From Takakia lepidozioides (lineage: Eukaryota > Plantae > Bryophyta), in NCBI GenBank assembly GCA_030704615.1, contig CM060732.1, positions 15,004,001-15,068,000 on the forward strand: 64,000 nucleotides of DNA, given 5' to 3'. This document shows positions 1-47,120 of the stretch, piece by piece. The notes beneath the pieces were generated by a model, which saw nothing but the letters and a program-made list of their open reading frames with translations, was not told the DNA's origin and made no database searches. The position numbers and the translations under genes are program-made. Numbering within the stretch: the first letter of the stretch is position 1; every line of letters begins with the position of its first letter.

Positions 1-837
1 TGGGCAAAATTCACTCACTCACACCACCTCCGTTATATACCGGCCGATCACCATTACTCCAGACAAGGTGGACTTAACTACTCATCCCTCAGTCTTCTTG
101 ATGGTTTATACTTCAAGACACAAAATGACATCCCCTCATACCTCAATAGTCATGTACACATTAATAGTTTATGCAACTCAGACCATTATCCCGTCTCAGT
201 CACCATCCCAGCATCCATCATCCCCTTTCGACCTATCCCACCCATACATGTTCCACCGCCGCAATCTAGAATCTTATCCCCACTTCCCCACAATAACATA
301 ATCGCCTTTCTAAAACACTTCCAGCCAACATCCTTACACCTCATGCTAAGACTCTCCGATATACTCTCCGTAGCAAACCTCAAGCAGTCCCCTGACAAAG
401 CATGGAACGACGCCGAGACCATACTCACAACCTCAATGCAAGAAATGACCAAAAGTGTGATTGCCACCTGCTCTGCCCCCCCTGAAATCCCACAAACTGC
501 ACGCTCAAAACAAAATGGTGGCTACCTTACCCGTACTAAAAAACGTATATGGACATCACATCTTAACACATACCACACGATCAGGCGTGCCCTCGCTATT
601 ATACCCACCACTACCCCCATTCACCAGGGAACAACAGGACATCGGACCCACGTATCACTTGCCTAAATACCTTAACAACGTGTCAAGTACTCATGTCACC
701 ACCTGCCAATCTTCAAAATATCAAAATGGACAGCTGCTCTCTCCAAAGTTGGCAGAGATGCCAAAAAAGCCGCTTACAATATTACCAAACAAAAAGCCGT
801 CAACAATCACAAAAAATTCGTCTCCTCTTTTAACCAA

Positions 838-2770
838 TTGCTACGCGACCACCCCAAAAAAGCTCACAAAGCCATCTTTAACCCTGCCCTCAACCCACCC
901 ATTGACTGTCTCAAACACAGACACAGCCACTTGCTAACCAATCCAGCGGACATCAACCAAGAAATATGGTCACAAGCATCCTCAACATACACACCTGCAG
1001 TTCCAAACTGCTTACATTCCCGTCTCTACTCTGCCAATTGCATGTGTAAAGCTAAACACTATCCGTGGCATGATATAGATGGCTTCTCGATTGACAATAG
1101 AGGATCCCCAATGGATCGCATCATAGACCTATTCACAATTGATCTTTACGAATCATGTCTAAAAAAACTATCAAAATCTAAAGCCCCGGGCCCCGATCTT
1201 ATACCCAATGCTATACTTCAAGTTTTAAACCCTCAACTTCACTACCTCCTTTTTAAATTCTTTCAACTCTGTTACAAACTAAAACGAATCCCACACTCCT
1301 GGAAACACAACCGGACCATTCTACTCTTCAAAAAATGTGATCCTACAGATCTCAGTAATTACAGACCCATAGCACTGGCCAACACCATATACAAGCTATT
1401 CACCAGTACGCTCACCACAATGCTATCAAGATATGGCGAGCAACACCAAATTCTCAGTGACCCCCAAGAAGGATTCCGAGCTACACGTAGTACAACACGA
1501 CAAATACAATATGTTCTCTCCGCACTTGAAGATGCTAAACTTACAAAGCAAGACATCTATCTTCTATATATCGATTTTAAAAATGCCTTCGGCTCCCTAG
1601 ACCATGCTAGATTACTTGCTATCATGCTTGATCTTGGGTACCCCACCGATGTCGTCCAACTAATAGGAAACATCTACACAAACAGCACTACTGAATACTT
1701 TTGCACATATTATGGCTCCACCCCGCCTATCCCCATCCTTCCAAACTATCCAGGGTGACACCTTAAGCCCCTACCTATTCATTATCTTCCTAGAACCCCT
1801 ACTTCGATGGTTAGCTCGAGGCAAGCTTGGCTATCACTACAAAACCTTCTCAAGTGACATCTCAGCTGCAGCATATGTAGACGACCTAGCCATCCTGGCA
1901 CATAAACCACAACACCTCAACCGACAAGTTAATAAACTACTCAGATTCAACCTATGGTCAAGCATGGAACTCAGCTTACACAAGTGCGCCATCACAGCCG
2001 CCACACATCATAGTCGTCTCACCAAAACTGCCATAGCCTCACATTGTAAACTCTATGTACACTACCAAAACACACCCTTCCCCTTCCTAGGACCAGACGA
2101 GCCATACACTTACTTAGGCATACAACTCGTTCCCTCCCTTACTTGGCATATCCAAAAAGAATCTACATCATCCAAACTCACTACCAAAAGTATTGCTCTG
2201 CTCAAATCCCCAATTGTCATTCGACCAAAACTATCAATCATTCAATCAGTACTACAAACACAAATTCAATACTCGTTCCACGCCGCACCCTTCTCCTTAT
2301 CAGACATCAAAAAACTTGATAAAAGTATTATCCAGCTAACAAAATGTGTATGTGGTCTACCAACTAGCACCCCCAATGCCCTCACACAGTTTACGGACCA
2401 CTACGGCATTGGTTCGAGCCCATTAATCATCTCATATGCTCGCACATTAGGCACCCAATTAAAAGAAGCACTCAACGATCATAGGCGTCTAGGTATCATT
2501 TATCAGGGACTTCTCAAATACCTTGCATCTAAATACAATGGCCTATACTCATTATCATCCCTGCACCCACAAACCTGCCTACACTCCCCCACTGCACGCA
2601 CACTACTTATCCTGCGCCAAATGAAAATTAGCATACAAACTGATCTGCCTGACTATCCTAACACCTCATCACCCTTAGAACGCGCATGGCTTACAAGCCC
2701 TTCTCTACCACAATTTGACATTTCTTATCCCAAACAAACGGTCCCCATCCTCACATATTTCAAAGAATGA
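838..2770 (+). pseudogene. LINE reverse transcriptase domain (frameshift at ~1735)
   Basis: KAPGPDLIP, NYRPIALANTIYKLF, QEGFR, YIDFKNAF, QGDTLSPYLF, YVDD, YTYLGI. Confidence 0.95.
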
Positions 2771-3226
2771 CACATCACCACCCTCACCCAACTTACTACC
2801 GCCACTGGCCATAGACTTTTAAAACCTAGCGAATTCACTCTTAGATTCTCCCAAGCCACGACCAAAACCAATCGCTACCTACATCATCTTCGTACCATCT
2901 TCTGCCATCCCTCGACTGCCTGCACTCTACAATGTGACCTCCCATGCCTCTACTATCCGCATACGGCTCAAGACCTGCTCCCCCAGTACCGTTCTACCCC
3001 TACTACCTCCATCTACCAAACACTCAAAACGACATATGCCACCAATACCCAAACAGACATAGAATCTGATTTCCCCTCTCAAGTAACTACCACACAACAC
3101 CCTGAACCTATCCGCCACTTGCATACGCCATCCAACCCCTCACCTACTATACAAGGATCTCACACCCCCCTAACCACCGCACCATCCCCCCCATCTTCAC
3201 CACAATACGACGACAATAACAATGCT

Positions 3227-3428
3227 CACATCATTGAAGCTATACTAGGAGTTAAAACCCAAACGTCCATTGATGCCTTTGGAGCCACCTGCATTGATAC
3301 ATATTATCACTGTCAATGGGCTGGGTACTCTTCCGCAGACAACACATGGCAGATAGTAGACGACCTCTTCGGCCTACACGACGATTGCGACCCCGAACAC
3401 AATCTTGCCCTCCTCTCCACCTTCCATA
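3227..3428 (+). pseudogene. Chromodomain within LINE ORF2
   Basis: HIIEAILGVK...YYHCQWAGYSSADNTWQIVDDL matches the chromo pattern (Y)xVExIL...YLVKWxGY...NTWEPxxNL. Confidence 0.75.
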
Positions 3429-3828
3429 AACAAACCAACACCAACTATCTAACACACATGCACCAACAACACACCACTCCCGCCCAACCTACAGATAACA
3501 AATATATACACCAACCACTCTATGCCCCCAACGGTCACATCTGCATACCTGAATGTAATCCTGACAAAGATGTCAAGCATGACTAACCTCTAATCCACAT
3601 GGGCCCCCGCCTTTCCAACATTTATGCTCAACATGGCCGCTTCATTGGCCTCATCCCCAATACAAGACTAACGTGGCTCTGGGAGAAATACTCTACTACT
3701 ACCTCATCCCCACAAAGACTTTGCTACCGAATTATATTGGCTGGTTGATCGCTACCTCAAAGACACCCCCCCCAAGAAACCGCGGTCCCTCACTAAATTG
3801 GAAACAACATGTGCGCACCATACTATAA

Positions 3829-4275
3829 CCCAAAGATATTCTCTCCTTACTTATCAACACATTCCAACTTACTCACTTATATTACTCCAACCCATTGACA
3901 TGCCCTATGGCATTGCCTACATTCTCTAGCCCCACACCACAGAGACTGTATCTTTGGAGCCACTGGTACTGCCACCCAACACACCTGGGAAGGCCGGGGC
4001 CTTGCCCACCCTCCACCTGGTTCTCCTTCTCACGAAGCTCTTCAATGGGCAAAACTTGTTGCGCACTCCTCTCCTACTGCATCCACACTCCTCATCCTCA
4101 CACAACAAAACACTCCTTATATTTCTCACCCTCTTCTACAACTCCCAGAAGGGGTCAATCTACTCGCCACAATTGACCCAAACCAACTTAAGTATATTCA
4201 CACCCCTCCTCTTCCCAAATATCTCAAATGGAAGGAACCCACCCTAACCCTGATTCTACACATCCAAAACCCCCA
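3829..4275 (+). pseudogene. PCIF1/CAPAM-like N6-adenine methyltransferase-fold domain within LINE ORF2 (frameshift at ~3940)
   Basis: Manual translation: PKDILSLLINTFQLTHLYYSNPLTC...FSSPTP/RDCIFGATG...WEGRGLAHPPP...SSPTASTLLIL...TLILHIQNP; collinear with recalled PCIF1 motifs FASPLNC, DxxFGSxG, ANPPF, FLQN. Confidence 0.65.
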
Positions 4276-4454
4276 GCATACAGTCATACCGCCATCTTTC
4301 TTTTCTAAGCTCGAACAATTGCTCACCATCACTCATAAACTAAAAGCCACCATCCATTATCCAACCATTATCTCCCACACCGATACACCCACCACATTGT
4401 CCCAGATCAAAACCAACAAAGCTTGGAACATTGCAACACCACGCCCTTCCCAGG

Positions 4455-4918
4455 TCATGCCAACAACAACCACCATGGCTACTACCATGCATATGTACCC
4501 GATCACCATGCTCGTGCCCCGCTCGACTTTGCCCGGACATACTCCTCGTCCAAGGTCTACCTATCAACACTTTACCCCCCACCTCACCATCCCCACAACT
4601 CACCATCCATTTCATTGAATTCACATTTTGCCATGATCGTTATCCAAACGATTCAATCTTAGAAAAACGCAAAAATATGCCCTGCTTATCCTTGCACTCC
4701 GAAGGCGTGGCTGGAAAACCGGCCTGTTAACTGTCATCACAGCCGGCACTCGAGGTGACATTCATAACGCCAGTATCATGGACATACACGATAACTTCCA
4801 AATTCCCATTCTTCCCATCCACAAATGTTTCAAAGAAATCCATCTCACGGCACTCCGTTCACTCGCAGCTATTATCACCAACAAATGCCAACTGGAATCC
4901 GGCACTTCAAACGCACCT
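4455..4918 (+). pseudogene. Restriction-like endonuclease (RLE) of the LINE
   Basis: PWLLPCICTRSPCSCPARLCPDILLVQG...FIEFTFCHDRY...EKR then (frameshift) KKYALLILALRRRGWK...ITAGTRG. Confidence 0.8.
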
Positions 4919-5277
4919 TAGGTCCCCCAGGATACCCCTGGGTACCTAGGAATACCCTCACCCCCTCTATTCTTAGCGGTCACCTGGTGTCCCCCTGGAC
5001 ACTTTTTTGTTATAGGGCCCACCCCTGAAAGGGGGCAGTAGCCGCAAGGTGAAGTGGCTCTTAGTTATGTCGGCCTCGGCCGGAGTCTTCCCTCTCTCTG
5101 GATGGAAATCAGAGTGCTGTCCTAATTCTGGGTTTGGGTGGTGGAGCTTCTCCAAAGCTTGAAGATGGAAGTGAATACGAATTTTACTGAGCTTGATGAG
5201 AGGGGCAGCCCTGTGCACAAGTTTGTTCAACATCTTAAATTTGGACATGTTTGTTTGTTTCTCGTGGTGTGGCTTTG

Positions 5278-5778
5278 GATGGAGCCCTTGATGAACTTAC
5301 ATGAATATTGTCAAAAGCTAGCATTAACCCACCAAGATCCAATCCCACGGTGGATGCTTGAAAGTTCATATAGTGAATGTAAGGGTATTTGGGTATGTTG
5401 ATATTGATTGATGCGGCTTGTGAAAATTGAACATTGAAATGCAGATCCGCCATTTTTCTTCCAGAAAAAAAACAAAACACGGGATCTCTGCATGTAACAC
5501 AGTGGGGATGACCCCACCCATTTTTTGTGATGGAGCCCTTGATGAACTTACATGAATATTGTCAAAAGCTAGCGTTAACCCACCAAGATCCAATCCCACG
5601 GTGGACGCTTGAAAGTTCATATAGTGAATGTAAGGGTATTTGGGTATGTTGATATTGATTGATGCGGCTTGTGAAAATTGAACATTGAAATGCAGATCTG
5701 CCATTTTTCTTCCAGAAAAAAAACAAAACACGGGATCTCTGCATATAACACAGTGGGGATGACCCACCCATTTTTTTA
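5278..5778. repeat. Tandem duplication, 2 x ~251 bp
   Basis: ATGGAGCCCTTGATGAAC... at 5279 and 5530; near-identical units. Confidence 0.95.
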
Positions 5779-5857
5779 TGAAAAATTGAACGTAGTTCTC
5801 AGAATTCATCGCTAGTAGTGTGGAGCAACGTGAAGCCCTAGTATGATATGTATAACA

Positions 5858-6237: not shown

Positions 6238-6868
6238 TGAAGTTCCGAAATGCGTTCCTTTATGTAAGATTCCACGATTCAAGTACTTTGGGAACTTGAG
6301 AGACATCGTTGGGCAAGAGAGTAAGCTTCCTTGTGTCTAATCTGCAAAACACTGTGCGAGAGTGAGAAATATCCAACATTAGGAGGGGAAAGGAGGAGAG
6401 AGATTGTTTGTAAATGTATCACAATCCCCATCACTAAACTGCCCTGTAATTGAGACGCAAACAATGTTGAGTTATACATGACGAGGCAGCAGTACACCAC
6501 AAATGACAAACGTGGGCGAAGCTGACGACGCAATCGCGCCAGATATCGGTGAGGTTGTGTCAGAGCTCCAACGATCGCGTCGTCAGCTTCGCCCACGCTT
6601 GCCATCTGTGTTGTGTTGTTGCCTCGTCGTGTATAGCTCAACATTGTTTGCGTATCAATTACATGGTAGTTTAGTGATGGGATTGTGATACATTTACAGA
6701 CGAAATCCCTCCTCCATTCCCCTCCTAATATTGGATATTTCTCACTCTCGCATTGTGTCTTGCACACCAGATACAAAAAAACACACTCTTTCGCCCAACG
6801 CAGTCTCTCAAGTTCCCCAAGTACTTGGATTGCGGAATCTTACATAGGGCAATGCCTTTCGTAACTTC
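6238..6868. repeat. Fold-back inverted repeat (~290-bp arms, ~35-bp loop); MITE-like or hairpin locus
   Basis: 6238-6536 is the diverged reverse complement of 6571-6868. Confidence 0.85.
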
Positions 6869-9256: not shown

Positions 9257-10106
9257 GTGTGGAGCAAGCATTCAACTTGCCCCCGCAACCTTTCATTGGA
9301 CTCAAAATCCCCGGTGACCTCCCCGACTCCTGTGTGTGAAGCTGCGGCTCGGGAGCGCCCACCTGCGTAGTCCTTCCACGGGCCGGATAAGTCACTTTTC
9401 ATTTCAAATTTGCTGGGGAATTCTCTAGCAAATGCGCCCTTGCCATCTCCCTCCCCTATCTATTTGCCTCTATTATCTATCTGCCTACAACTTGCTCACA
9501 ACCGAATGTGCTCATGCTCCAAGCTTGCTCACTAGCTCGTGGCATTCGTCTATCAGGGAGCAACTCCTCATTCACCCGAGGACGTAGCTACGGCGTGAGC
9601 CTAGCCACGTGAGCCCAGGAGCTCGGCTCACGCTTTGCCCTCTAAGCATGAGCCTAGGCTCACCCTTGCTAAGCGTGAGCCCAGGGTTTAGAGGAGAGAG
9701 AAGCAAGTCCTATAACCGAGGACAGGGTGGGGCCTATTACCGTGGAAGTGTATATTTTGGAAAAAGAGGTGAACACGGCAAAACTTCCAAACACGGCAAA
9801 CACGGCAATAATGAGTCCCCTTTAAAAGCACGACGATCCCAATTCCCCTAGCCCTACTTCGTCAACCCCAATCACTCCCACCCCAAGCACTTCACGCAGC
9901 TAGTCCTACCCTCCACCAACTCCAAGTGCTCCACCTTGAAGACGAGCCCCAAGCCGCGATCCCAACCTGGCCCCACTCTCACCAAGCTTCTTTAGTCACT
10001 GTTCCTCCAAGTAGATAACCAACATGTAACCCAGTGGTAATGGGCACATACCACGTTGAATGTGGTTGTGGGTTCAAACCACGGTGTGGTGTGTCAGAAA
10101 GGTGTC

Positions 10107-10758
10107 TGTCAAGGACGAGAACATGACTGAACACAAACAAGATATTAGACTAGAGGTACAAGACTAGACAAGATGTCAAGGTCGGCGTGGCCGAATACAT
10201 GGTGGGTAAACATGAATCAAGATGATCTTTATAACAATGGACAAGAGTACAAGATACTGGAACTCGACTCGAATACTGGAATGCTGGAAACTGGACTGGG
10301 ATACCAGATACTAGAAACTGGACTAGAGTACTGGAAGCTGGATTGGAGTACTGGGACTGGGAACAAGAGTAGCTTGAACTTGTGTTGCCGAGACTGAAGA
10401 GTGTCCAGTCTCGCCTCCTATATATACTGGCTACTAAGAAGCTTCCCTAAGAAACTTCTCCTATGGAGGTTTCTTGCTGGAGAAGTTTCCAAGATTAAAC
10501 AAAGGTTTCTTGATGGAGAAGCTTCCTTAAGCAAATGGAGGTATCTTGATGGAGAAGTTTCTTCCAAATGAAGCTTCCTGATCAGTTTCCCAAGTTACTC
10601 TTGGTAATTTGGTAAACTCCCGATAACTTGGTAAGTAATGGTAAATCATGGTAGATCATGGTAAATCATAGTCAGTCATGCTAACTTCCGGTAATATGAT
10701 AACTTGATAGCTTCTGGTATTTACTCCTGGTAAGTTCCTGTGGGCTATGTCCGTGACA
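10107..10758 (-). repeat. 3' LTR of the chromovirus (652 bp)
   Basis: Direct repeat of 15488-16100 with a ~39-bp extra segment. Confidence 0.95.
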
Positions 10759-10912
10759 TCACCCCCTCCTCTAGTGCCGAGTTCCTCGAGGAGCGGTAAA
10801 ATCTTGGACTTGCTTAGAGTTGGAGAACCTCCCTCCTTAGTGTGTATCAGATACACTGAATGTGGAGTCTTCACCTTGAAGCTAACTTGGCTGACATCAT
10901 TGTTGTGATGTT

Positions 10913-13900
10913 TTATTGACGTGTAGTTCGGGGCTTAGCTGGATATCGTTGATGAAACTCTTGGACTTTGTCAGATGCATTGACAAGGTTGGATGAAGGT
11001 TCCCACGTTCGTTTGCTGATGTCGTAGCCTTTCCAATGTACAAAATACTCAAGACGTTTATACTTGATGCGAGAGCCTAGGACTTCGTCGACTTCATACT
11101 CGATTTCCTGATTGACTTCGATTGGTGGAGGTGATACGGAGACTCTCCCTGGAATATTCGATGGATGATACAACTCCAATAATGAAACATGAAAGACTGG
11201 ATGGATGCGCATACTTCGTGGGAGTTCAAGCCGAAAACTGACCGGATTTATTTGTCGAATAATTTTGAATGGTCCCAGGCGTTGATAATCCAACTTCCTT
11301 GATGGTCGCGAGGTTTGTATGTCCCGTCGAAGAAGCCACACACGATCTCCGACCTTGAACTGGGGTTGGAGTTGGCGATGTTGATCTGCACACTCTTTGT
11401 ATTGTTTTTGAGCTTCTGCGAGGTGGAATGTAAGCTCTTTGTGAATCGTAGCAAGATGAGTAGCAAGGTTTTCTGCAGCAGGGCTTCCAACAGTCTTCAT
11501 GTGGAAAGGGTTTGCTCGAGGATGATGACCATAATTGGAGAAAAATGGAGTTTGCTTGGTCGAAGAATGTATAGTGTTGTTGTATGCAAACTCAACCAAT
11601 GACAGAAGGTCCGTCCAATTATCTTGGTGATAATTTATCGTACAACGAAGATACTGCTCCAAAATCTGGTTTACGCGTTCGGTTTGACCATAAGTCTGTG
11701 GATGATTAGCTGTAGAGAGATTGATCTTAGTATCCAATATGTGAAATAATCCCCTCCAGAAATTTGATATGAACTGTGGTCCTCGATCAGATACGATGTC
11801 TTTCAAGAGTCCATGAATGCGGTAGATATTATTAAGAAAGAGTCTTGCAGTTTCCTCGCCGGTAACCGTCTTATTACATGGAATGAAATGTGTCATCTTT
11901 ATAAAACGATCTACAATAACAAGGATTAAATCGGTGGTCTTGGAAATTGGAAGGTCCGTAATAAAGTCCATAGACACGGACGACCATGGACCATTGGGAA
12001 TGGGTAATGGTTGAAGAAGGCCGTAAGGTCGATGTCGTGGTCCCTTCGCTCTAGCACACGTGTCGCAAGATTTTATAAATTCTTTCACGAGTTTCCACAT
12101 TTGCTGCCACCAATAGTCCATGTATATCAATTCCATTGTTTTGTTGAAGCCGAAATGTCCTGCAGCCGGAAGATCATGACATATTTGAAGAATTCGTAGT
12201 CGTGTAGGTCCTGGAGGTACATAGAGAAGTCCCTTGAAATAAAGTAAGTCATCTTTGAATTCGAAGTCGTTTGTAATATGTGGATTGTCTCGAGGTCGAT
12301 TTAGTTGACTTCGTAGTGTCGTAACAAATTGGTCGCTCTTCAGTGCTTTCTAAATCTCTTTTATGATCTCTGCATTGTCATAGGTGGACATAGATGACAT
12401 ATTCAATTGGAGATTTGCTGGTTTCAAGATGATGGATTTTTGTTGGTCAAAAGTTGCATCCCTTTCTTTTGGCGCAAGATACGATCGTCGAGAAAGAGCA
12501 TCTGGTTTTCCTTGAAGATGTCCGGGACGGTAGGTAATAACAAAATCAAACCTTGCTAGCGAAATACTCCATCTCACTTGACGTCAATTCAAAACACGAG
12601 CACTCATAAAATACTCGAGGTTTTTGTGATCGGTATAGACAGTGACCCGATGTTTAGCTCCCTCCAATAGATGACGCCACTCCTCAAAAGCATCGATAAT
12701 CGCTAGAAATTCTTTGTCATGGATTTCATAATTGATCTCCGTAGCGAAAAATTTGCGAGAACGAAAACCAACAGGGTGGAGTCAGCTATCTGTACCGTAT
12801 TGAGAGAGTACCGCGCCAAGTGCAAAGTCCGATGCATCTGCTTCCAAAAAGAATGGTTTAGATGGGTCTGCATGTACCAGTATTGGAGCCGTTGTAAATG
12901 CCTGCTTCAGCCTTTCAAATGCTTGGTCAGCCTTCTCGTCCCATACAAATTTGTCCTTCCCTGTGAGTCGTGTCAATGGTGCAACAATTTTGGAGTAGTC
13001 CTTGATGAATATTCTATAGAAATTTGCAAATCCCAGAAAACATTGTACATCTCGGACCGAAGTTGGTTTAATCCACTCGATGACGGTTTGTATTTTCTTC
13101 TGATCCATAAAGACGCCTTTGTCGGAAATAATGTAGCCCAAAAATTCGATCTCAAATTGATAGAAAAGATATTTTTTCAACTTGGCATATAGTCTTCTTT
13201 CTCTTAATTTATCAAGGACAAGGCGTACATGGCGGCCATGTTCTTCTTCATTTTGTGAAAATATCAAAATGTCGTCCAAATAGATGACTACAAAGTCATC
13301 TAAAAATTCTCGAAAGATGTCATTCATCATATGTTGAAAAATTGCTGGAGCATTTGTAAGATCGAAGCATAACACTGTATTCAAAATGTCCATACCTTGT
13401 TCGAAAAGCTGTTTTCCATTCGTCTCGTTCTTTTATCCGTACAAGGTTTTAAGCTCCTCTCAAGTCAATTTTGGTGAAAATCTTTGCTTGTCCCAGTTGG
13501 TCGAGAAGCCCAGAAATCAGCGGCAACGGATAACGATTCTTAATTATGACTTTGTTGAGACCGCGATAGTCCACACACATGCGTAATGATCCGTTTTTTT
13601 TTTTCACAAACAAGATAGGCGCCCCTGCAGGTGATTTTGAATGTCGGATGAAGTTCTTCGACAAATTTTCATCAATGTTCTCACGTAATGCAGCCAACTC
13701 TGTCTAGGATAAGTTATAGATTGGGCCGAATGGTGGTTGGGCTCCTTCTTGTAACTCAATTGCACAGTCATAAGGTCGATGTTCTGGCAATATGTCTGCA
13801 TTTTTCTTCTCGAAGACATCCTTGAAATCTTAATATTGAGTGGGTAATGTCGAAGTACCTTTGTCTGTTGTGGTCTTGATCGGAGTCGCATAAAGTGCAA

Positions 13901-14290
13901 ATGCCACATCTTTTTTGGTAGCTCTCATGAAAGCTCTAGCTCCAAGGAACAGAGGTTGAATACCTTTGATATTTCTACATTTTTGTCTTGCAGAAATTTT
14001 TCGCGATCGCCAGTCGATGTCAGGATTGTGAAGTACGAACCAGGGAAGTCCAAGAATCACAAGATTCATTGGAGACTGGATGATGTTGAAAACAATATGT
14101 GATGCTTGATCTTCAAGCTTCACTTCAAGTGATCGAGTTTCATGGTCAACATTTCCTGATGCTAACGGTCGTCCATCGATGACTTCAACGGGGGCCGAGA
14201 GTTTCTTCTTTACGAGCGTTAAATTGTGTTGCTTCGCAAAGTTTTTGTCAATAAAACATGCTGAAGCCCCTGAGTCCAAAAGTGCTTCTA
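10913..14290 (-). pseudogene. Chromovirus pol: protease, RT, RNase H, integrase, chromodomain
   Basis: [42 protein letters not shown]...SDRG...TERVNQ, LGPF, YEVDEVL...WKGY...TWEP; multiple stops. Confidence 0.95.
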
Positions 14291-14437
14291 CAGAGATATC
14301 TCAATTTTGCATTCTGATTTTTACCGGAACTGTGAAGCAAGGTGCAGGGTCTGGAGGTAGAAAGAGACATTTTTTTGGTGAGGAATTTGTGGTGTCCAGC
14401 CGCATGGTCCCTACTGTGACTGGACATCTTCGTTTTC

Positions 14438-15449
14438 CTACCTCATCGTATCAAACACTTGAGTTGCGCCCCGAGCTTTGAATCTTCTCTTGTTGGGGCA
14501 GTTTAATGCTATATGATCTTCTTCTCCGCAATAGAGGCATAACCCATTCAAGCGCCGTCTTTGTTTTTCTTGTGGCGTCAATGGCTTGAATCGGACAACA
14601 TCAAACTGCATAAGATCACTACCGGATGTCTGATGGATCGTTGTGTTTGGTGCCGTAGTAGCAGCGGCATGATGCGTCGTCGACCATCCAGATCGCTTCT
14701 CTTGACGTCTTTCGAACAAACGATTATCGCATGCAATGACTTGGGTGATGAATTCGCTCAGTGTGCTCAAGTTTGGCATTGTTAGCAACAAATCTTTTAC
14801 ATCCTCCTTTAGCCCACATCGAAACTGACTAATGAGGCTCTTCTCATGCCAGTCGAGGTCGCACGTAAGTTGTCAAAATTCGGCAACATAACCGGAAGCA
14901 TGACGTGCTCATTGTCGAAAATTTCGCATCTTTGTCTCTGCAACTCTCTCCGTATTATTTTCTCCAAACGTTGCAGTGAACTCGGACATTATGCTTCAAG
15001 ATTGAATAGTAAATGCGATTTTTTTTTCTAATAGCGGTGCAAACCAAGATAGGGCAGTGCTTGATAGAAGGGTGCCAATGAATCCCACTTGAATACCTTC
15101 ATCGGGGTAGCGTTGTGGATGTAGTCGTAGGAACAGTCGTATTTGTTGAACAAACCGCGAAATCTTGATCTTGTCCCATCAAATTTCTTGGGCATGCTGA
15201 TCTTTGGTTCTCTCGTAATCTGTTGAAGAGGAACTGTTGCAGTAGGAGCTGTTGCAGTAGAGACTCGTATGGTTGAAGATCCATTGTTCGACTCCTTTCA
15301 CTCTGAAATTTGTTGTTGCAAATTATGGAGAATGTTGCCAAGATCTTGAGACTGATCGCTTGTAATTGGGCGGTAGAGGTACGAAGTTCTTGCATCTGGA
15401 GCTGAAGACTCTGCAATGTGGCGACCATTTCCACAAATGTGCCTTCCAT
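14438..15449 (-). pseudogene. Chromovirus gag with CCHC knuckle
   Basis: CLYCGEEDHIALNC; frameshifted. Confidence 0.85.
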
Positions 15450-15470
15450 CTTAACTAACTAAGGAACAAA

Positions 15471-15487
15471 CTTCAGTCTCGCCAAAC
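15471..15487 (-). promoter_or_regulatory. Self-priming (Tf1-type) primer binding site
   Basis: Minus-strand GTTTGGCGAGACTGAAG next to the 5' LTR is complementary to an LTR segment ~20-25 nt downstream of TATATATA. Confidence 0.7.
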
Positions 15488-16100
15488 TGTCAAGGACGAG
15501 AACATGACTAAACACAAACAAGAGATCAGACTAGAGGTACAAGACTAGACAAGAAGTCAAGGTCGACGTGACCGAATACATGGTGGATAAACATGAATCA
15601 AGATGATCTTTATAACAATGGACAAGAGTACAAGATACTGGAACTTGACTCGAATACTGGAATGCTGGAAACTGGACTGGGGTACCAGATACTGGAAACT
15701 GGACTAGAGTACTGGAAGCTGGATTGGAGTACTGGGATTGGGAACAAGAGTAGCTTGAACTTGTGTTGGCGAGACTAAAGAGTGTCCAGTCTCGCCTCCT
15801 ATATATACTGGCTATTAAGAAGTTTCCCTAATAAGCTTCCCCTATGGAGGTTTCTTGCTGGAGAAGTTTCCAAGATTAAACAAAGGTTTTTTGATGGAGA
15901 AGCTTCCTTAAACAAATGAGGTATCTTGATGGAGAAGTTTCCTCCAAATGAAGCTTCCTGAGCAGTTTCCCAAGTTACTCTTGATAATTTGGTAAACTCC
16001 CGGTAACTTGATAAGCAATGGTAAATCATGATAAATCATAGTAACTTGATAATTTTTGGTATTTACTCCTAGTAAGTTCATTTGGGCTATGTCCGTGACA
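15488..16100 (-). repeat. 5' LTR of the chromovirus (613 bp)
   Basis: TGTCAAGG...GTGACA, followed by the TSD GTGTC. Confidence 0.95.
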
Positions 16101-23751: not shown

Positions 23752-26700
23752 TTAAGTAAATATGGACAAAATGATGAAATCTGGACATTTGATAAATAAT
23801 TGTAAATAATTAATAAATATGGAAAATACTATATTCAGTATTAACAATGCATTAAAGCTTACAATTTTGGATTTTCCAGGATTGGTCCGAAAAGTAGCAT
23901 CGTCCTTTGCAAAATAAATGACAAACAAGACACCTATGTTGAATTTGAGGAGATCGCTTGTGAGTATATTCCTGGCGGGGAGATCTCCCGTGCACTTGAT
24001 AGATAACTTCTCGCAACCCACGCGAAACGAATCATTCGATCACTACATGATGGTTTAGGGGAGAGAAGATGAGAGGAGTTTTCCCGTGAAAACGTAACAA
24101 ATGCATGTCAATATCATATAAGAAACAAGGTAAGAGCTTTAAAACCAGAATGGGTCGTGACTCAAAATTATTGGTAGAAACATTGAAATAATTATTGAAA
24201 CTTAAGGGATAGAAAAATCTTTGTCACATTGAGGACATGAAATAACAAACGAAATGCATTGAACCGTCAAATACAAGGTCAGATACAATGTCAAGTACAA
24301 TGTCAGCTTGCTGCTGGTGCTCCCAGACCTCCCCCCACCAAGGGAGATCTCCCGTGCTCCATACGAAAAGCGTCGAGCCGTCAAATTAAAAGAAAGTAAG
24401 ATCTAGAAACATTCACATGAACTGGTCATCCAGAAATTAAAACTGTCCGGTAAAACAACAGTTATTTGTCACCCTCCGAATACCAAATAAGAATCCAGTA
24501 AATGCCGAATAGACGTCGAGACATAGCAGGGGAGACCTCCCGTGCTACAACTGAAACCAATAGCACAATCGCGAAAATACAATTTAGAATGTCGGCGTCA
24601 TAAGGCGCCACTGTTAAAATCGGAATAGTGAACGACATTCTGCTAGAGAAGATATAAAGGTTTTGGACCAGACAAAATCCTCATCGTCTTCAGAAAATGA
24701 AACATTTGCGAGTCCTTACTATATTCTTTAATGAGCTCTAAGACAAATATAGTAATCATGATCGGAAATAGTCAAGTCACTGTAGCACGGGACATCTCCC
24801 AAGCACTATGTGTAAGGGAGAAAACCATCAACCACCATAGGAGATCGGCCGTCCGACATACGAAATGCGTGGAACCGTCAAACGGAAACAAAGTAAAATG
24901 TGCAACCATTCACATCCACTGGTCATTCAAAAATTCAAAATTTTGGAGATCAGAACAAAAGCTATTTGTCCGCAGACCAAATAAGAATCCAATAAGTAAT
25001 ATTAAAAAAAACAACGAGACATACCACGGGAGACCTCCCGTGTTACACCTGAAATCAATAACAACATCGCGAGGATACAATTTACAACGTCAAATTAAGA
25101 AGGGGCCACCGTTGAAATAGATATATAAAAGGACACTCCGCTAGGGAAGAAAATACGATTTTCGGACCCCGACAAATCCTTATCAGATAACGAACCAAAT
25201 TGGGACTCATAACTATATTATTCAAAGAACGCTATGGTGAATGAGAATATTAATCATGTTAGTCTGCAATAGTCAAGTCTCTGTAGCACGGGAGATCTCC
25301 CATGCTATGCGCGTAAAGGAAAATACAATCAACCAGAACTAAACTTTATTGAGATGCCGGCAGTCAGGGTTCAAATCGCTAGAGATATAGATGTTAAGAA
25401 ATTGAAAGGTTGAAATGGTCGACACAGAGAATTCAAGGTCAACTTCTGATTGTCAAAGGAGCTCCCACAAAAACCTGGCAATCACCAGTAAGATCAATAT
25501 GAACACATATTGTCGTCAAATTAGCACGGGAGATTTCCCGTGCACCTTTCTACACTGTGCTTAATCAAACTCACATTGATCGTTTGCAGCATATAGATTT
25601 GCTTTTGCTTTAACTGCTTCGGCCTTTCCAATACGTCTAGAGCTCCACTTGGAGGTGTTTTTCCGAGGACGCATTGTCCACACCACACTGTTCGTATGTA
25701 TCCACTTTGGTGGATCAAATTCACTGAACTCCCAAGCTTTGTCCCAATAGTTTCTATACCTGTCCACGTCCTCTGCTGCACCACCTTTAGGTCTCCACCA
25801 CTCCAGAAAGACTTGCCGATATCTCTCATCTGAATGGTCACGAACAACATCTGAAATTGCTACACCCATCCAAACTGGATATGTCTCTGTGTCTGGTGGT
25901 CGTACAAGTACGAAGTTTTCAATTTCAATATCTTTGAATGGGTTCATTGGCTCTTTAGGTCTCTGACTCTTTGGCCCACAATAGGGATCCAGCTGGTTGC
26001 GATCTTCCTCCTCTGACTCCTCCTGACTCTCATATTCAACCCTAATCCAAACTCTCCGTCAAGAGTGATAAAAAAAGCAAGCATCCAACGATTTTTGTTC
26101 TCTCTTGAAGAATTGTCCATTTGCAGGTATAGTCGACGGTTTAATGGCTTGGCTCGAACAGGGCCTTGGGATACCCTAGGCTTCAGTGCTTTCTCACATC
26201 GAGACTTTCCCCTCATTAGAGTTTCAAAAAAGGAGTTCTGCATTGGATGATCAAAAATTTCTTTTGACTCTCGACATGTGGGCTTCTCAAGAGCGCGAAG
26301 ACAACGAACCAAGGAGCTAATTGTCAAGTTAGGATCACTTGGCCAGAACTCGTTGGTGAACTGAGCATAAGCACCGTCACCATGGCCATGAGTCACCATA
26401 CCTGTTAGGGATATAGGTAGATGACCCAGACCAGATTTCATCTTGTTTGTTACGAGGAGCCGGGGCAAGGCAGTCTTTGAGTGATCCATCTTATCGTGTA
26501 TAATACACAGAAACTCCTCACCCATCATCGTTGATTCATTCCGCCAACTATGATAAAGCCTGCGACATGACTCTTGATGCTTCAAATGTCTCTCAAATTT
26601 CTTTTTGTGCTTTCTCTGCTCCTCAGTTCCGCTGACTGACTTCTGGATAAGATCTTTGAACATCTCACAATCTGTGCATTTCGGGAATTTTTTCACCAGG

Positions 26701-29700
26701 TTTCCGAACTTCAACATTCCCGAAAACTTTCGTTCAATTTCGGCTTATTCCAGACTTCGACAATGCCTTCAAGCCCATTCGTTTGTTTGCCTGATCCAAT
26801 TGTCAACAATGTATAGAGTTGGTAACGTATTTATGACGGGACAATTCCCGTGGACATTAACATTGAAATCGAACATCCAATATCTAAAACCAACAGATAT
26901 GAAATTTGATAGATGCAAAAATAACGATAGAAACAAACATTTGTTCGTAAAGAGATGGACTAACTTCTCTCGGAATGATCCATCAATGGTCTGTCGGTTT
27001 ATATGCTCACAATTTGATATCGACTATTAGCACGCAGAGATAATGATGATGGGAGGTCTCCCGTGACATCCCCTCCCTTGAAAGTAGAAATATTGTTAGA
27101 GGCAGATCCTGATTGGGTTGGAAAGCAGTATCCTACCTCATTGGACTATCGGTTCTGCTTCTTCCAATTCATCTCCACCGGCAGCAACTTCAGAATATCT
27201 TGCCTTCCTTCTCCGATACCTCTCATTTTATGAGACATGAGGTCACTGTTTCTTGAAATCAGCGATAACAAATTTGCCTCGGCCTGCAGGGTTACTGCTC
27301 GGGGTTTCTTCATTCCTCTGTTTCCATGCATTGATGAGATGTATCCATCCTTACTCTTCCTCTTGTATCCATGGTACGTTGACCTTCCGATTCTATGGAT
27401 TGTCCACCACGCCTTCTCACAGACCTCAACTGCTTCCATTGTAAGGTAGGCAAGACGACCACAACCTGGAAGTCGGTGTAGTCGTCGGGGGATGTCAAAC
27501 CCTAAAAAGAAGATGCCAAGAACTTACTCCGGGCAGCCTTAGTTTCTCCCAACTGAAGTGTTGACAACAGTTTCGAGCACAACAGCTCACATAGCTTACT
27601 GCTTGAATTGACTCCGAATTTAAGAGTCGGATCAATTTCGTCCCCCTGGAGTTCTCATATCCCTTTCGAACTCATTTCAAACATTTATATTGCGATTTCT
27701 TAACTCCTTCGAGGTGGTCATCCTTCGTGTCTGACTCGTGCTCTTCATAAAACTTTGTGAGCAACTCTGATAGTTTGCGGCCGTCTCGAAGTTTTGTATG
27801 TGTAAGCCGCCATTTCGTAATTGTCATTAACATATCCTAAGCTGAGCCAGAGACAGCTGTAACGATTACACCGACATGTTCCTCCCCAAGGTTTTCAGAG
27901 AGAATAACTTCGTCAGGAAGATAGGCCTCAATCCGGCCTTCAGCGATGACGTCCATCTCATCATTGAGAAGATTGCACATCTGATTACGCCAAGTATCTC
28001 TCACCCTCCATTCGCACACATTTATGAACTTGACTAACTTTCTAGACAACGGGTGTCCCCAGGGCTTCTCCAAGAGTTTCCTCGTTTGGATGTGAAAATG
28101 GTAAGCTAATGGACTCCATTGCATGTGTCATGGTTTTCAAGATGACGCTCACTAGACTACTAGAGAAACGCTTGCCATGACAAAATCCCTCTCCCGATAT
28201 ATTCAGACAGGTACCTTCAGCAACAACCTTAGGAACTCTTGAGCCGGCGAGGTGGAGTAGACTCACGACTTCTCCGACTGACAACTCTCCTATGGAGGAA
28301 ACCATCTTCGACCGCGGGAGATCTCCCGTGCTATACTGCTATGTGTATCCAAACAAATTTGTTTCAACTACAGTAGGACAATCTGCCGCATGACGGGAGA
28401 CCTCCCGTGCGATGGACAACACCTAAACATGGCATCTGACATCCTGATTTCCCAATACATGAATTGTAAGACTTGTCTCTCCACAAATTGAAGGGAGACC
28501 TCCCGTTCCCTTGGCAAAGACCCTAAGCCCATGTTGCCTTGAAACACCAGAAATGAGCCCACAAAGAAAAACAGATGCCGAAAACAAATGCAAACATAAC
28601 TGACGAAGTCTGTTAAGTATGACAGGAGATCTCCCGTTCTCTTCGCCTCAGCCATAACACAGGCATGCACTGACGATTGGGCCCAGGAAGATTAAAGAGA
28701 ATGCAGATTACAAATACAAACTAAAAGGGGGGAGAATGTTAAGGATGACGGGAGATCTCCCGTTCTCTTCTCTTCAACCCTAAAACTGAATCGAAACAAA
28801 ACACCAGGTATGGGCCAGTGGAGAATCACATCTGCTGAATACAATGACACAACACAGCAAGGTTCAATTCCAAAACTTGACAATCCCTCTTGACTCCACG
28901 AAGACATGAAGCGGAGGATGTCTGAGGTGAGTCTGTAAAAACTACTGAAAAGAGAGAGAGAGTTTGAGAGGACTTGGACAGAGAGTAGATAGACCATCCT
29001 CCCACCCCTCCCGAAAACCTGCACTCCCCATTTTGGCAGGGCTTCGCCGAGACAGGATGAAATGAGAGGGAAAATGTTGCCCTTATATAGACCCCCATTT
29101 GCATGCGGGGGCATGAGGCTAACCACCCATACACGAGGCTTGTACAACAAGGGGAATCGTTTCATTAATTACTTGTCATAATGACTGGGACAGGGGGCCT
29201 CCCGTACCCGGCAGTATGACATCTGCATGGCCGCCACGTGGATGGATATCATCTATGGTGTACCTGCACGACGACATCAATGTAATCGGAACCGCCCGAT
29301 GGGATCCCAAATCTAATCTGAGCCGTCGGATTCGATGGATGTCGTATGACCTCCCATGACCATGATGACGCTGCGCCGCGCCACAAGAGCTCTCCCCACG
29401 CAACATTCATTGAAGGGTAAGATTAGTCGTAGCGTACCGTAGCGCTGCCGCCGCATTATGGCCACGTGGAGCACGGGCATTGAATGTGTGAAGATTCCGG
29501 GCGTACTGTGGCATTGGCGGCCTCCTGTACTCTGACGTTCCAGCACATGCGTAACCTGCCTGCTCTCCACGTGCTGGAATACTAACTATGGATATGCCAT
29601 CACATGCATGCTCAAATACATCGTTGAATCAAGACCGTCCATTACAGATGGAGGGCATAGAACCTTCCATGTTCATGAGTTGAATGCGCCGTTTCACGGT

Positions 29701-36699: not shown

Positions 36700-37530
36700 G
36701 CCCATCCAAGGGGGGTCACAAGCAAACCGATGCCATACAAGCAGCTACCATACCCCTATATACACGTACGCTCATGCGCATGCTTCCCACAACACCCAAT
36801 GCACTGGCAGATACGTAGGCAATCAATCTCCGCACCAAACAAACTTCAAGCGAATTTGACAGTGACATGGGCAGTAGTCCCTCAGACTCTAAGAAGTCCC
36901 GGGGACCCGCTGAGTCCGGCCCTCTACAAGTCAGGGACACATCAAGCTCCTACACCACCCCTCAAATATGGATGGGAACCCGACACTGGAACAAATCGCG
37001 GAAGATTCCAATGCCCCCTTTGTCACCAAGGAGCGATCGGGCCTCGAGCTCCAAAGTTTGGGCCTCTGCCATGCAGAAATCTATGATATGCAACACTGCC
37101 TCAATTCCTACCCAAGGGTGCCTCAACTTTTCTTCCCAGCAACAAGACCGGATGGGCGGGAGGGCCAGTTGTACCCATTTACGCAGTTGCCCAAGGGCAC
37201 ACAAGTGAATCCGGTGTCTGGGATACCGCTATCCCCTCCACACATCATGATACGATTCGACAAAGACTTCAATATGCCCAACGAGCAGGCCCTTTACAGA
37301 GCACGGAAGCGATTCGAATCAATGAACATCCTTCTCGGGAAGATCTTATACTCACCCCTCACTGCGTACACGAAGCACGGAAGCAAGAATTGGTCTGGGC
37401 TAAAGGTCGAGCTACTGCACCCACACACAGATGGGTTGGCTCTCTTACGAGGCGACATGCCCTTTATATTGGAAATGGCCTCCGGTGTGCCAAGAAGGGG
37501 AATCTCCCCGCCTCACCAGATCACCTATCA
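36700..37530 (+). pseudogene. LINE ORF1 N-terminal fragment
   Basis: YPRVPQLFFPAT...YPFTQLP...WSGLKVELLHPHTDGLALLRGDMPFILEM resembles bryophyte LINE ORF1 (from recall). Confidence 0.5.
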
Positions 37531-40000
37531 AGTCTTGGAGCGGAATGATTGTAGGATATGCGCAACATGGGTGCGGATGGTGGCTTTGGAGACCTATGAG
37601 CAAATAGTGTGGGAAGGGGTGAAGCCCAACCACATCACCTCTATTTGTGTCTATAATGCGTGTGCAAGCCTAGCAGCCCTGGAAAAGGGCAGAGAGGTCC
37701 ATGGTGACATCATCAAAGCGAGAATTGAACCAGATATTGTTCCGAACAATACCCTCATGGACATGTATGCCAATTGTGGGTGCATCGAGGATGCAAAGGG
37801 AGTGTTGGACAATATGACTGAAGGAGATGTGGTGTCTTGTAACGCCATGATCGCAGGGTATGCACAGCTTGGGCGCGGGATCGAGGCTCGGCCATGCGAT
37901 GCATACTGAATTCTGTAAGTTAGCTCATTGGCTTCTGAAAGAGGATCAAGAGAGGGAGTCCATAATGCCTCTTCTGGCTCTTCTGAGCATGTGAAGATGC
38001 TTTGTGAGGTAGGCAGACTGAAAGAGGCTCTACAGACTTTAAACCAAGGAGCATTTCAGCAGATTCAGATATGTATGTGGTACAATGCTTTGGATGAGCG
38101 AATGATGCACGAAGGGGTGAAGCCGAACCACATCACGATTGTGGTTGTGTTTGCAATGCGTGTGCAAGCCTGGGAGCCCTGGAAAAGGGGAAAGAGGTCC
38201 ATGGTGACATCTTCAAAGCTAGAAGTGTACCAGATGTCATTGGTGTCATGGAACGTGATGCTTGCAGGGTATGCACATCAAGTATGGAGGCTTCGAGACC
38301 TATGATCACATGATGGGGGAAGGGGTGAAGCCCGACCACATCACGTTTGTGTGCATTTGCAATGCTTGTGCAAGCCTGGTAGCGCTGGAAAAGGGCAAAG
38401 AGGTGCACGGAGACATCATCAAAGCTGGAATTGTACCAAACATCATTCTGAACACTGCCCTGGCAACTTTGGAAGGGGGCAAAGAGGTCCATGGCGACAT
38501 CGTCAGAGCTGGAATTGTAGCAAATGTCATTCTGAACACTGCCCTAGTGGACATGTATGCAAAATGTGGGTGCATCGAGGATGCAAAGGGAGTGTTCGAC
38601 ACTATGGATGAACGAGATGTGGTGTTGTGGAGTGTGATGCTTGCAGGTATGCAAAGCAGGGACAAGGGATGGAGGCTTCGGAGACCTATGAGCAAATGAT
38701 GGGGAAGCACATCATGTTTGTGTGCATTTTCAATTCTTGTGCAAGCCTGGCAGCCCTAGAGAAGGGCAAAGAGGTGCATGGGGATATCATCAAAGCTGGA
38801 ATTGTACCAAATGTCATTCTGAACATTGCCCTGGCAGCTCTGGAAAAGGGGAAAGAGGTCCATGGTGACATCTTCAGAGCTGGAATTGTACCAGATTTCA
38901 TTCTGAACAATACCCTGGTGGACATGTATGGGGATATCGTCAAAGCTGGAATTGTACCAAACGTTATTCTGAACACTGCCCTGACGGCAAAGAGGTCCAT
39001 GGCGACATCGTCAGAGCTGGAATTGTAGCTATGTCATTCTGAACATTGCCCTAGTGGACATGTATGCAAAATGTGGGTGCATCGAGGATGCAGAGGGAGT
39101 GTTCAACACAATGGTTGAACGAGATGTGGTGTCGTGGAGTGCGATGCTTGCAGGGTATGCACAACAGGGACGGAGGATGGAGGCTTTGGAGACCTATGAG
39201 CAAATGATGGGGGAAGGGGCCACATCATGTTTGTGTGCATTGCAATGCTTGTGCAAGCCTGGCAGCCCTGGAGAAGGGCAAAGAGGTGCATGGGGATATC
39301 ATCAAAGCTGGAACTGTACCTAATGTCATTCTAAACACTGCCCTGGCAGCTCTGGAGAAGCGGAAAGATTGCATGGCGACATCTTCAGAGCTGGAATTGT
39401 CCCAAATGTCATTCTGAACAATACCCTACTGGACAGGTATGCAAAATGTGGGTGCATCGAGGATGCAAAGGGAATGTTCAACACAATGGCTGAACGAGAT
39501 GTGGTGTCGTGGAGTGCGATGCTTGCAGGGTATGCACAGCAGGGACGTGGGATGGAGGCTTTGGAGACCTATGAGCAAATGATGGGGGAAGGGTTTAGCC
39601 CGGCCACATCATGTTTGTGTGCATTGCAGGCCTGGCAGCCCTAGAGAAGGGCAAAGAGGTGCATGGGGATATCATCAAAGCTGGAATTGTACCTAATATC
39701 ATTCTAAACACTGCCCTGACAGCTCTGGAAAAGGGGAAGGAGGTCCATGGTGACATCTTCAGAGCTGGAATTGTACCATATGTCACTCTGAACAATACCC
39801 TACTGGACATGTATGCAAAATGTGGGTGCATCGAGGATGCAAAAGGAGTGATCAACACAATGGTGTGCCTGAACGAGATGTGGTGTCGTGGAGTGCGATG
39901 CTTGCAGGGTATGTAGAGCAGCCCGACGTGGGATGGAGGCTTTGGAGACCTATCAGCAAATGATGGGGAAAGGGTTCAGCCCGGCCACATCATGTTTGTA
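37531..40000 (+). pseudogene. PLS-class pentatricopeptide-repeat pseudogene with internal tandem amplification; no E/DYW domain seen
   Basis: P (DVVSWSAMLAGYAQQG...), L (HITFVCICNACASLAALEKGKEVH...) and S (NVILNTALVDMYAKCGCIEDA...) motifs; many frameshifts. Confidence 0.92.
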
Positions 40001-45088: not shown

Positions 45089-45455
45089 TGTCATGGTTTT
45101 AGTCATGGTTAACTAGAATTACCTACTTCTTGTTAACTAGGACATTTTGGATATTTATATTTGTATTTTGTGTGTTGGGACTTCATTTGGTCTCACATGC
45201 CAAGTAAGGTGTCAAACCTCACTTGGGACATGGGGATGGATTTTCCCCTTGTGAGTGTTGAGGAGGGCTCTTCTTCTTGTAGTTGAGCCTCCATGAGCCT
45301 CTCCCACCTCCATAGCTCTAGGTATTGAGAGGGAGTGTGGTGAGGGCTTTGTAGGGTGGATTCCTTTAGCAAAGGTGCCCTTGGCTTGACTTAGTTTATG
45401 TGATTGAGTGGATTCATGAGTGGAGTGTTTCCATTGTGTGTTCACTTCCATTATC
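45089..45455 (+). repeat. Repeat A1 (367 bp); A2 at 55670-56036
   Basis: Near-identical direct repeat. Confidence 0.95.
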
Positions 45456-46947: not shown

Positions 46948-47120
46948 GAGTATGGGCTCCCTCTGCCCATCATACACTTTTAATAACAGAGTATGGAACC
47001 CCTCTGCCCAACATACACTTTTGTGAACAAAGTATGGACCCCCTCTGCCCAACATACGTTTTTGTGAACAGTGTATGGGCTCCCTCGCCCCACCATACAC
47101 TTTTGTGAACAGTGTATGGA
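46948..47120. repeat. 41-bp tandem repeat (~4 copies) in the 5' leader
   Basis: GTATGG...CATAC hairpin-like units at 46948, 46989, 47030, 47071. Confidence 0.85.

Follow-up and report, generated by a model that had tools for sequence, protein, structure and literature searches.

The 64,000-nucleotide stretch of Takakia lepidozioides DNA analyzed here (contig CM060732.1, positions 15,004,001 to 15,068,000 of the forward strand; hereafter the window) begins with a long interspersed nuclear element (LINE), of which a single decayed copy occupies position 1 to approximately position 5000 on the + strand, as determined by three-frame translation of positions 1-5100. The toolkit of LINEs is usually small and fixed, comprising a nuclease, a reverse transcriptase (RT) and sometimes an RNase H. 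A preliminary description of this DNA, made from the letters alone, had proposed that the element additionally carries a chromodomain and a PCIF1/CAPAM-like adenine methyltransferase domain, the latter located between the RT and a restriction-like endonuclease (RLE), and that the two form a reader-writer pair. Our analysis supports this architecture through the homology and predicted fold of related elements (designated below by P and L numbers) and points to a PCIF1-like domain that has probably ceased to be an enzyme. The features of the LINE copy are as follows.

1..240, + strand: putative C-terminal tail of an apurinic/apyrimidinic endonuclease (APE)-type endonuclease, from the frame-1 translation (LLDG...NSDHYPVSV), the remainder lying upstream of the window start.
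178-195, + strand: SDH signature (SDHYPV) of the APE tail, from the frame-1 translation.
838..2770, + strand: RT, with Pfam RVT_1 at E 6e-13 and 7.3e-13 on two open reading frame (ORF) halves.
Near 1712-1758, + strand: frameshift within the RT.
1874-1885, + strand: RT motif YVDD.
2768-2770, + strand: stop codon terminating the RT.
3227..3430, + strand: chromodomain, Pfam Chromo E 4.8e-4, 20.4 bits.
3584..3586, + strand: premature stop in the interval between the chromodomain and the PCIF1-like domain, which differs in every contig of four public runs.
3599-4290, + strand: the whole PCIF1-like domain, in frames 2, 3, 1 and 2.
3599..3714, + strand: PCIF1-like segment 1, frame 2; beta-hairpin and helix at the N-terminal end, with RLTWLW at 3665-3682; aligns with relatives.
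3717..3827, + strand: PCIF1-like segment 2, frame 3; DFATELYWLVDRY, a helix and basic linker.
3829..3930, + strand: PCIF1-like segment 3, frame 1; THLYYSNPLTC block at 3871-3903.
3935..4290, + strand: PCIF1-like segment 4, frame 2; RDCIFGATG, HPPP as the equivalent of motif IV, and the end of the Rossmann fold.
4291..4468, + strand: Pro/Thr-rich linker, which precedes RNase H in intact relatives and here ends at the deletion junction 4468/4469.
4470..4921, + strand: RLE-like nuclease core, called at motif level and by tblastn with P0005 and P0006; read in frame 3 up to a shift at 4669/4670 and in frame 2 after it.
Motifs of the RLE-like core, + strand: Cys-rich CxCx4CxC, CPDILL at 4530-4550, IEFTFC at 4614-4631, QKY at 4670-4687 and TAGTRG at 4739-4756.
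4919-4921, + strand: stop codon of the RLE-like core.
4922..5000, + strand: 3' untranslated end of the LINE, marked by a switch in GC skew.

The + strand of the LINE is strongly G-poor, with a GC skew of -0.2 to -0.74 over positions 1-5000, and its 3' end was placed at approximately 5000 because the skew turns positive there. The extreme G-poverty (skew to -0.74) and A-richness of the sense strand are matched in metagenome relatives, the proteins of which are likewise rich in Thr, Pro, His, Asn and Gln; this composition is therefore a trait of the family rather than a product of decay in the window copy. A second copy of the LINE was looked for within the 64,000-nucleotide window and none was found.

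The PCIF1-like domain escaped the ORF track, as the preliminary description had recognized, through frameshifts which split it across frames 2, 3, 1 and 2, with breaks near 3714, 3827 and 3930 and the stop at 3584-3586 ahead of it. Aligned with relatives, the four frame pieces tile onto one continuous domain. All five of the peptide blocks on which that description relied were recovered by translation in the positions given for them: PKDILSLLINTFQLTHLYYSNPLTC lies in frame 1 at 3829-3903, RDCIFGATG in frame 2 at 3941-3967, and SSPTASTLLIL and TLILHIQNP in frame 2 downstream of HPPP, ending at 4275; HPPP itself, at 4007-4018, indeed stands where PCIF1 has NPPF. The block of segment 3 corresponds to TFECFASPLNC of zebrafish PCIF1 in the family profile alignment, and in a structural model of relative L005 the counterpart of segment 1 (residue 120 onward) aligns to human PCIF1 beginning at residue 415.

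A HMMER search with the 238-residue frame-2 piece (3902-4615) against 1.84 billion representative proteins returned 35 proteins, 34 of them true relatives, with a best real E of 8.8e-18; across the window pieces, the family was joined at E 6.5e-13 to 8.8e-18. The top match of this search, P0001, was rejected as spurious, being a 1982-residue PKD/Ig-repeat protein matched in 11 low-complexity stretches. The database relatives of the domain all derive from metagenomes; further related loci in metagenomes were found with an alignment of 8 sequences, and a word-indexed homologue search yielded 11 proteins. Since the window's own pieces match neither Pfam nor the PDB, the link to PCIF1 is transitive through these relatives. 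In an alignment of 35 rows (33 relatives and two window pieces), 16 rows matched Pfam PF12237 at E<=0.01, with a best E of 1.1e-12, and the 31.1-bit cut-off of that family was exceeded by P0028 (47.3 bits), L002 (42.1), P0019 (41) and P0036 (39.4). PF12237 is named PCIF1_WW, a misnomer for what is a CAPAM-like methyltransferase and not a WW domain (PMC7641849). Searched against PDB sequences, the family profile found zebrafish PCIF1 as its best match (E 0.012) and human PCIF1 as its third, pairing THSYYSSPLTC and RD-x-IFGS-x-G of the family with TFECFASPLNC and D-G-FFGSRG of PCIF1; the single relative P0019 gave no match to the PDB by phmmer.

The predicted folds agree with this assignment. 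For an AlphaFold2 model of residues 1-235 of P0006 (predicted local distance difference test score, pLDDT, 70.8), the top 6 Foldseek matches were all PCIF1/CAPAM, with Z 9.1-10.4. A model of L005 running from the chromodomain through the complete methyltransferase fold (pLDDT 79.3) matched six PCIF1 entries in Foldseek at E 5e-9 to 2e-7, versus 4e-4 for the next entry; superposed on PCIF1 (6IRV/6IRW/6IRX-6IS0), it reached Z 16.8-17.8 over 203-220 residues at a root-mean-square deviation (rmsd) of 3.3-4.2, spanning human residues 415-652, with ErmE as the next-best fold at Z 8.1. A shape search of the ESM Atlas led to chordate and arthropod PCIF1 clusters (template modelling score, TM, 0.54), and by language-model features PF12237 was present in 29 of the 30 nearest clusters, many of which represent short stand-alone proteins from giant viruses and haptophytes. 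The helical domain of PCIF1 has no counterpart, the relatives having a disordered linker and the chromodomain N-terminal of the equivalent of human residue 415, and no Pfam scan of window pieces or relatives matched a WW domain. Taken together, these sequence comparisons and models indicate that the domain is a true homologue of the methyltransferase domain of PCIF1 alone, human residues ~415-652. The preliminary description had made its case depend on a profile or structure match to PCIF1, and the relatives provide both, to PF12237 and to the PCIF1 structures. Accordingly little is left for the view that the likeness is a chance or compositional artefact, or a host-gene fragment captured by this copy alone, which we consider extremely improbable: the silence of Pfam and the PDB on the window's own pieces, the odd composition (Thr/Pro/His/Asn-rich, encoded by a G-poor strand) and the low-complexity match to P0001 speak for it, but several relatives pass a curated Pfam cut-off, PCIF1 structures occupy the top six places (Z 17.8 versus 8.1 for the next fold), and the domain recurs, in frame and in an identical position, in diverged elements of several metagenomes, and also in many copies in public runs.

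Intact relatives from several metagenomes encode, in one ORF, the RT C-terminus, the chromodomain followed by a long helix, a linker that is disordered and ends in ECNPDKD, and the PCIF1-like domain, and the same ORFs continue through a linker rich in Pro, RNase H and a CCHC knuckle to the RLE-like nuclease core. RNase H was recognized in P0005, P0006 and L002 (Pfam RNase_H, E 1.7e-14 to 3.2e-15), and the RLE-like core of the window is 39-52% identical to those of P0005 and P0006 by tblastn (E to 1.6e-26). In codon alignments of metagenome loci, the ratio of nonsynonymous to synonymous substitution rates (dN/dS) of the PCIF1-like domain was 0.10-0.14 for unsaturated pairs among L003, L004 and L005 (dS 0.18-0.47), with 0.26-0.34 for the adjacent linker in the same pairs and 0.23-0.52 for RNase H at larger, saturated distances. 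Judged by these codon comparisons, purifying selection acts on the PCIF1-like domain as strongly as on RNase H, and a dN/dS of 0.10-0.14 means that the domain is not merely decaying in the family. The further question raised by the preliminary description, whether the segment is absent or unconstrained in other members, is answered by its in-frame presence in relatives and the same low ratios.

Purifying selection of this kind could also reflect a structural spacer or oligomerization scaffold, the fold being kept for its shape and binding neither cofactor nor nucleic acid. Loss of the catalytic motif (below) fits such a role, the position of the domain between the RT/chromodomain part and RNase H means that spacing could matter, and selection for fold stability alone can yield a low dN/dS; however, the most conserved residues are the PCIF1 loop blocks and two near-invariant Trp (48/49 and 38/43) rather than generic core hydrophobics, which suggests a pocket or ligand surface. 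We therefore regard a pure scaffold as doubtful.

The active site was evaluated in 51 sequences aligned to a hidden Markov model of the family, namely 41 true database relatives, nine metagenome loci and the window copy, with X placed at internal stops in two of the metagenome loci and at each break through which the window copy was read. The catalytic [DN]PP[FYW] occurs in 0 of 49 family sequences and is replaced by [H/F/I]-P-x-[D/N]. Position 1 (N553 of PCIF1) is H in 37, F in 6, I in 2 and another residue in 4 of the 49, with D or N in none; position 2 is P in 39 of 49; position 3 is P, T or H; and position 4 (F556 of PCIF1) is D in 18, N in 13 and T in 8, with an aromatic in none of the 46 sequences that have a residue there. 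The loops of intact ORFs read HPHN, FPTD, HITN, HPSD, IPPH, HPPD and HPPN. Conservation is highest in two blocks common to the family and PCIF1, a Trp at -7, the helix AIHWAR-x-AA and a Trp at +35: the family retains the N-terminal blocks SPL[T/N]C and D-x-x-FGS-x-G, the Trp seven residues upstream of the motif is near-invariant (48/49), and the Trp at +35 from motif position 1 is present in 38 of 43 family sequences, the window copy having Thr (4112-4114) where the family has Trp. In human PCIF1 N553 and W588 are likewise 35 residues apart, going by the residue numbers of PMC13290413. W588 contacts the 7-methylguanosine (m7G) cap in the human enzyme (PMC13290413).

The preliminary description had suggested that the element marks its own RNA, cDNA or target site. 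This writer half is not supported, because the catalytic motif is lost (D/N in 0/49 at position 1, no aromatic at position 4) and both the cap-orienting helical domain and the WW domain are absent. The structurally known N6-methyladenosine (m6A) and N6,2'-O-dimethyladenosine (m6Am) RNA methyltransferases all carry [DN]PP[FWY], and mutation of the first or last residue abolishes the activity of METTL5 and METTL16 (PMC8287941); a screen for active PCIF1-like enzymes dropped candidates in which either this motif or the cap-stacking Trp was missing (bioRxiv 10.64898/2026.10.22.757692). A still active enzyme with a non-canonical "swapped" loop ([H/F]-P-x-[D/N]), which would mark the element's own RNA, cDNA or target DNA and so complete a reader-writer pair, must be set against this record, and also against the Phe (one intact subfamily) or Ile (P0005) at position 1, both residues being unable to hydrogen-bond the N6 amine. 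In its favor are the strong purifying selection on the domain, the constraint on the motif positions, with D or N at the fourth in most intact ORFs, the retention of the PCIF1 blocks SPL[T/N]C and D-x-x-FGS-x-G, and a weak activity of PCIF1 reported on uncapped RNA and DNA (PMC8931429, PMC9178792). We retain this swapped-loop enzyme as an unlikely explanation because the loop positions are constrained and not random.

The chromodomain of the window copy comprises HIIEAIL (3227-3247), CQWAGY (3311-3328) and NTWQIV (3341-3358). Its Pfam Chromo (PF00385) score of 20.4 bits is under the 25.1-bit gathering cut-off, and the relative P0002 scores 36.6-38.6 bits, over the cut-off. Residues 4-83 of the L005 model match the H3K9me3-bound chromodomains of Rhino (4quf) and Oxpecker (7vrf) with Z 6.8-6.9 and rmsd 2.3-2.4. 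The methyl-lysine cage of HP1-type chromodomains consists of three aromatic residues. By eye on the alignment, the cage Trp and Tyr are kept in the window (CQWAGY) and in P0002 (CHWQGY), both the window copy and L005 have His at the first position of the cage, and the L005/L010 subfamily is without the third aromatic.

A separate chromodomain is encoded elsewhere in the window, by a long terminal repeat (LTR) retrotransposon of chromovirus (Ty3/gypsy) type on the - strand at 10106-16044, bounded by LTR-like repeats (10106-10664 and 15487-16044, 93-96% alike) and containing an integrase-SH3-chromodomain ORF at 10916-12136 (Chromo E 2.9e-14) and an RT/RNase H ORF at 12785-13393. The LINE and the chromovirus each having one, two unrelated classes of retroelement with chromodomains lie in the window.

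In view of these results, we favor with moderate confidence the interpretation that the LINE pairs its chromodomain with a non-catalytic pseudo-methyltransferase that would serve as a binding module; of the reader-writer pair originally proposed, the reader is probably real and the writer unlikely. The preliminary description had itself offered a catalytically dead binding module as a fallback. With the catalytic motif lost and the domain under purifying selection in relatives, this is the better reading of the two. METTL14 is the catalytically dead partner of METTL3, with a degenerate EPPL motif, and serves as an RNA-binding scaffold. By analogy, the pseudo-methyltransferase may provide a binding function within the ribonucleoprotein of the LINE, much as METTL14 does for METTL3. 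Its ligand is probably RNA or a nucleotide, with the template RNA's capped 5' end and S-adenosylmethionine (SAM) as possible candidates; a cap ligand is suggested because a Trp occurs at the spacing of the cap-contacting Trp of PCIF1 and the PCIF1 N-terminal blocks are kept. The chromodomain, for its part, would anchor the complex on histone tails that carry methylation and thereby bias the site of integration, as in chromoviruses. A more far-reaching proposal is that the LINE lineage has acquired from PCIF1 a new module which either clamps the cap or 5' end and so recognizes capped template RNA, or is an active swapped-loop enzyme ([H/F]-P-x-[D/N]) acting with a chromodomain that reads histone marks while it writes adenine methylation on RNA, cDNA or target; we consider it improbable.

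Several points weigh against the pseudo-methyltransferase interpretation and should be read together. Binding by the PCIF1-like domain is a deduction, and the helical domain, which forms part of the cap pocket in PCIF1, is absent. The family Trp at +35 is matched to W588 by gap-free spacing and not by a residue-level structural alignment. The altered loop is non-random (H 76%, P 80%, D/N 67%, among sequences mostly <50% identical), and such constraint could mean an unconventional active site instead of a dead one. The window's own PCIF1-like pieces gave no PCIF1-type match in Pfam at E<=1 and nothing relevant among PDB sequences by phmmer at E<=10 (an interferon-lambda match being dismissed as chance). 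Both fold models are predictions, made for the relatives P0006 and L005 and not for the broken window copy, and the APE and RLE assignments considered below are motif-level calls.

This LINE lineage has gained two modules of the chromatin and epitranscriptome type, in the form of a chromodomain and a fold derived from PCIF1, and selection has preserved both. As far as our literature search showed, no PCIF1-type domain had been described in a transposon before, and this would be the first, together with a chromodomain outside LTR elements. As a natural pseudo-enzyme derived from PCIF1, the domain could separate, through its kept and lost residues, the parts of the fold responsible for binding from those responsible for catalysis, and it raises the testable idea that a LINE recognizes its template by the cap at the 5' end, or its target by marked chromatin.

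Comparison with known systems places the domain between several precedents. With PCIF1/CAPAM itself (the cap-specific mRNA m6Am methyltransferase, PDB 6IRV-6IS0) it shares the class I Rossmann domain with N-terminal hairpin and helices (human 415-652), the SPL[N/T]C and D-x-x-FGS-x-G blocks and a Trp at the spacing of W588, whereas the LINE domain is without NPPF and the helical and WW domains, lies inside a retrotransposon polyprotein and is probably no enzyme. With METTL14 it shares a methyltransferase fold minus the catalytic tetrad, conserved in METTL14 for the binding and positioning of substrate, and the LINE domain probably works in this way; METTL14, however, belongs to the MT-A70 clade and is joined to an active paralogue in a heterodimer, whereas the LINE has no evident active partner. 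Chromoviruses are Ty3/gypsy LTR retrotransposons with a C-terminal chromodomain. The LINE resembles them in a retroelement-encoded chromodomain presumed to steer integration to marked chromatin, and differs in that its chromodomain is internal, is accompanied by no integrase, precedes a methyltransferase fold and carries His as the first residue of the aromatic cage. The layout also has precedent among cellular proteins, since in the DCD- and eTudor-CAPAM-like fusions of haptophytes and choanoflagellates an N-terminal reader likewise replaces the helical domain (PMC7641849); those fusions are predicted active RNA methyltransferases with readers of modified bases, whereas the LINE has a histone-type chromodomain as its reader and is a transposon. 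Finally, DAM-LTR and DIRS retrotransposons carry prokaryotic-type Dam enzymes (bioRxiv 10.64898/2026.05.21.726589, where neither PCIF1 nor Dualen is mentioned) and thus, like this LINE, combine a retroelement adenine-methyltransferase fold with chromodomains, but there the enzymes are Dam-type with preserved catalytic pockets in LTR/DIRS elements, and here the fold is PCIF1-type, the motif is lost and the element is a LINE.

By its architecture, and not by RT phylogeny, the element would belong to the Dualen/RandI LINEs, the layout of which consists of APE, RNase H and a C-terminal CCHC plus PD-(D/E)xK-like nuclease (PMC4640811, PMC3636483). It has in common with these the RT and, in relatives, RNase H, together with a putative APE-type signature on the N-terminal side and, at the C-terminus, a CCHC motif with a putative PD-(D/E)xK-like nuclease. 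The APE tail, of which only the last ~80 residues lie in the window, had no Pfam match even at E 10 and was assigned at motif level. The RLE-like core likewise matched nothing in Pfam, among PDB sequences (searched as a single protein and as a profile) or among ESM Atlas features, so the RLE, too, is a motif-level call; the motifs aligned in this C-terminal nuclease are C-x2-C...H...C (relatives only), CPD, IEFT, K-x2-KY and TAG-x-RG. In our literature search, no Dualen element was described with a chromodomain or a PCIF1-like domain, PCIF1 was not linked to non-LTR, Dualen or RandI elements, and chromodomains were not linked to RandI.

The window copy itself is dead, with a stop in the module, a stop after the RT, at least five frameshifts, and the RNase H and zinc knuckle deleted; nothing in the window corresponds to residues ~137-544 of P0005, where RNase H and the CCHC knuckle lie, the junction being at 4468/4469. 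Contigs of four public runs (X1, X2, X5 and X6, from three studies), which mostly represent other copies of the family, were compared with the window over 3100-4920. Hundreds of contig pieces, from runs of the same organism label and from a plant metagenome, were 90-99% alike on this stretch. All contigs compared had a different letter at position 3584; other copies had 20 extra bases after 3714 and one base fewer at 3930, some had one base fewer at 3827, and the contigs diverged from the window at 4468/4469 and 4669/4670. Because the other copies differ at exactly those places, the defects of the window copy are real and private to it and not assembly noise, and the contig comparison shows that the usual form of the family is open across its breaks. 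None of the public runs recorded as RNA contains the stretch 3100-4920. The hundreds of closely similar pieces indicate an abundant family with young copies, and given this abundance and youth, intact copies should exist in the genome.

Several other repeats and ORFs lie in the window outside the LINE. Directly 3' of it is a tandem duplication at 5278-5779 with a 251-bp unit, 96% alike, followed by nested inverted repeats at 6239-6868 (arms 6239-6428 and 6679-6868, 83%; 6427-6536 and 6572-6681, 88%), which together form a near-perfect palindrome of ~630 bp resembling a miniature inverted-repeat transposable element (MITE) or foldback element. A DUF7869 ORF (Pfam E 2.7e-15) is present on the - strand at 25947-26717, and a repeat array at 37579-39967, made up of units of ~370-500 bp with 84-bp sub-repeats (D1-D3), lies just downstream of a pentatricopeptide (PPR)-repeat ORF at 36968-37906. 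Additionally, 300-nt direct repeats at 45085-45384 and 55666-55965, 97% alike and 10.6 kb apart, enclose an RVT_1 ORF (52358-53281, E 1.7e-33) and a PHD finger ORF (54450-55322, E 2.8e-11), and the interval 45085-55965 may be another retroelement with a histone-reader domain.

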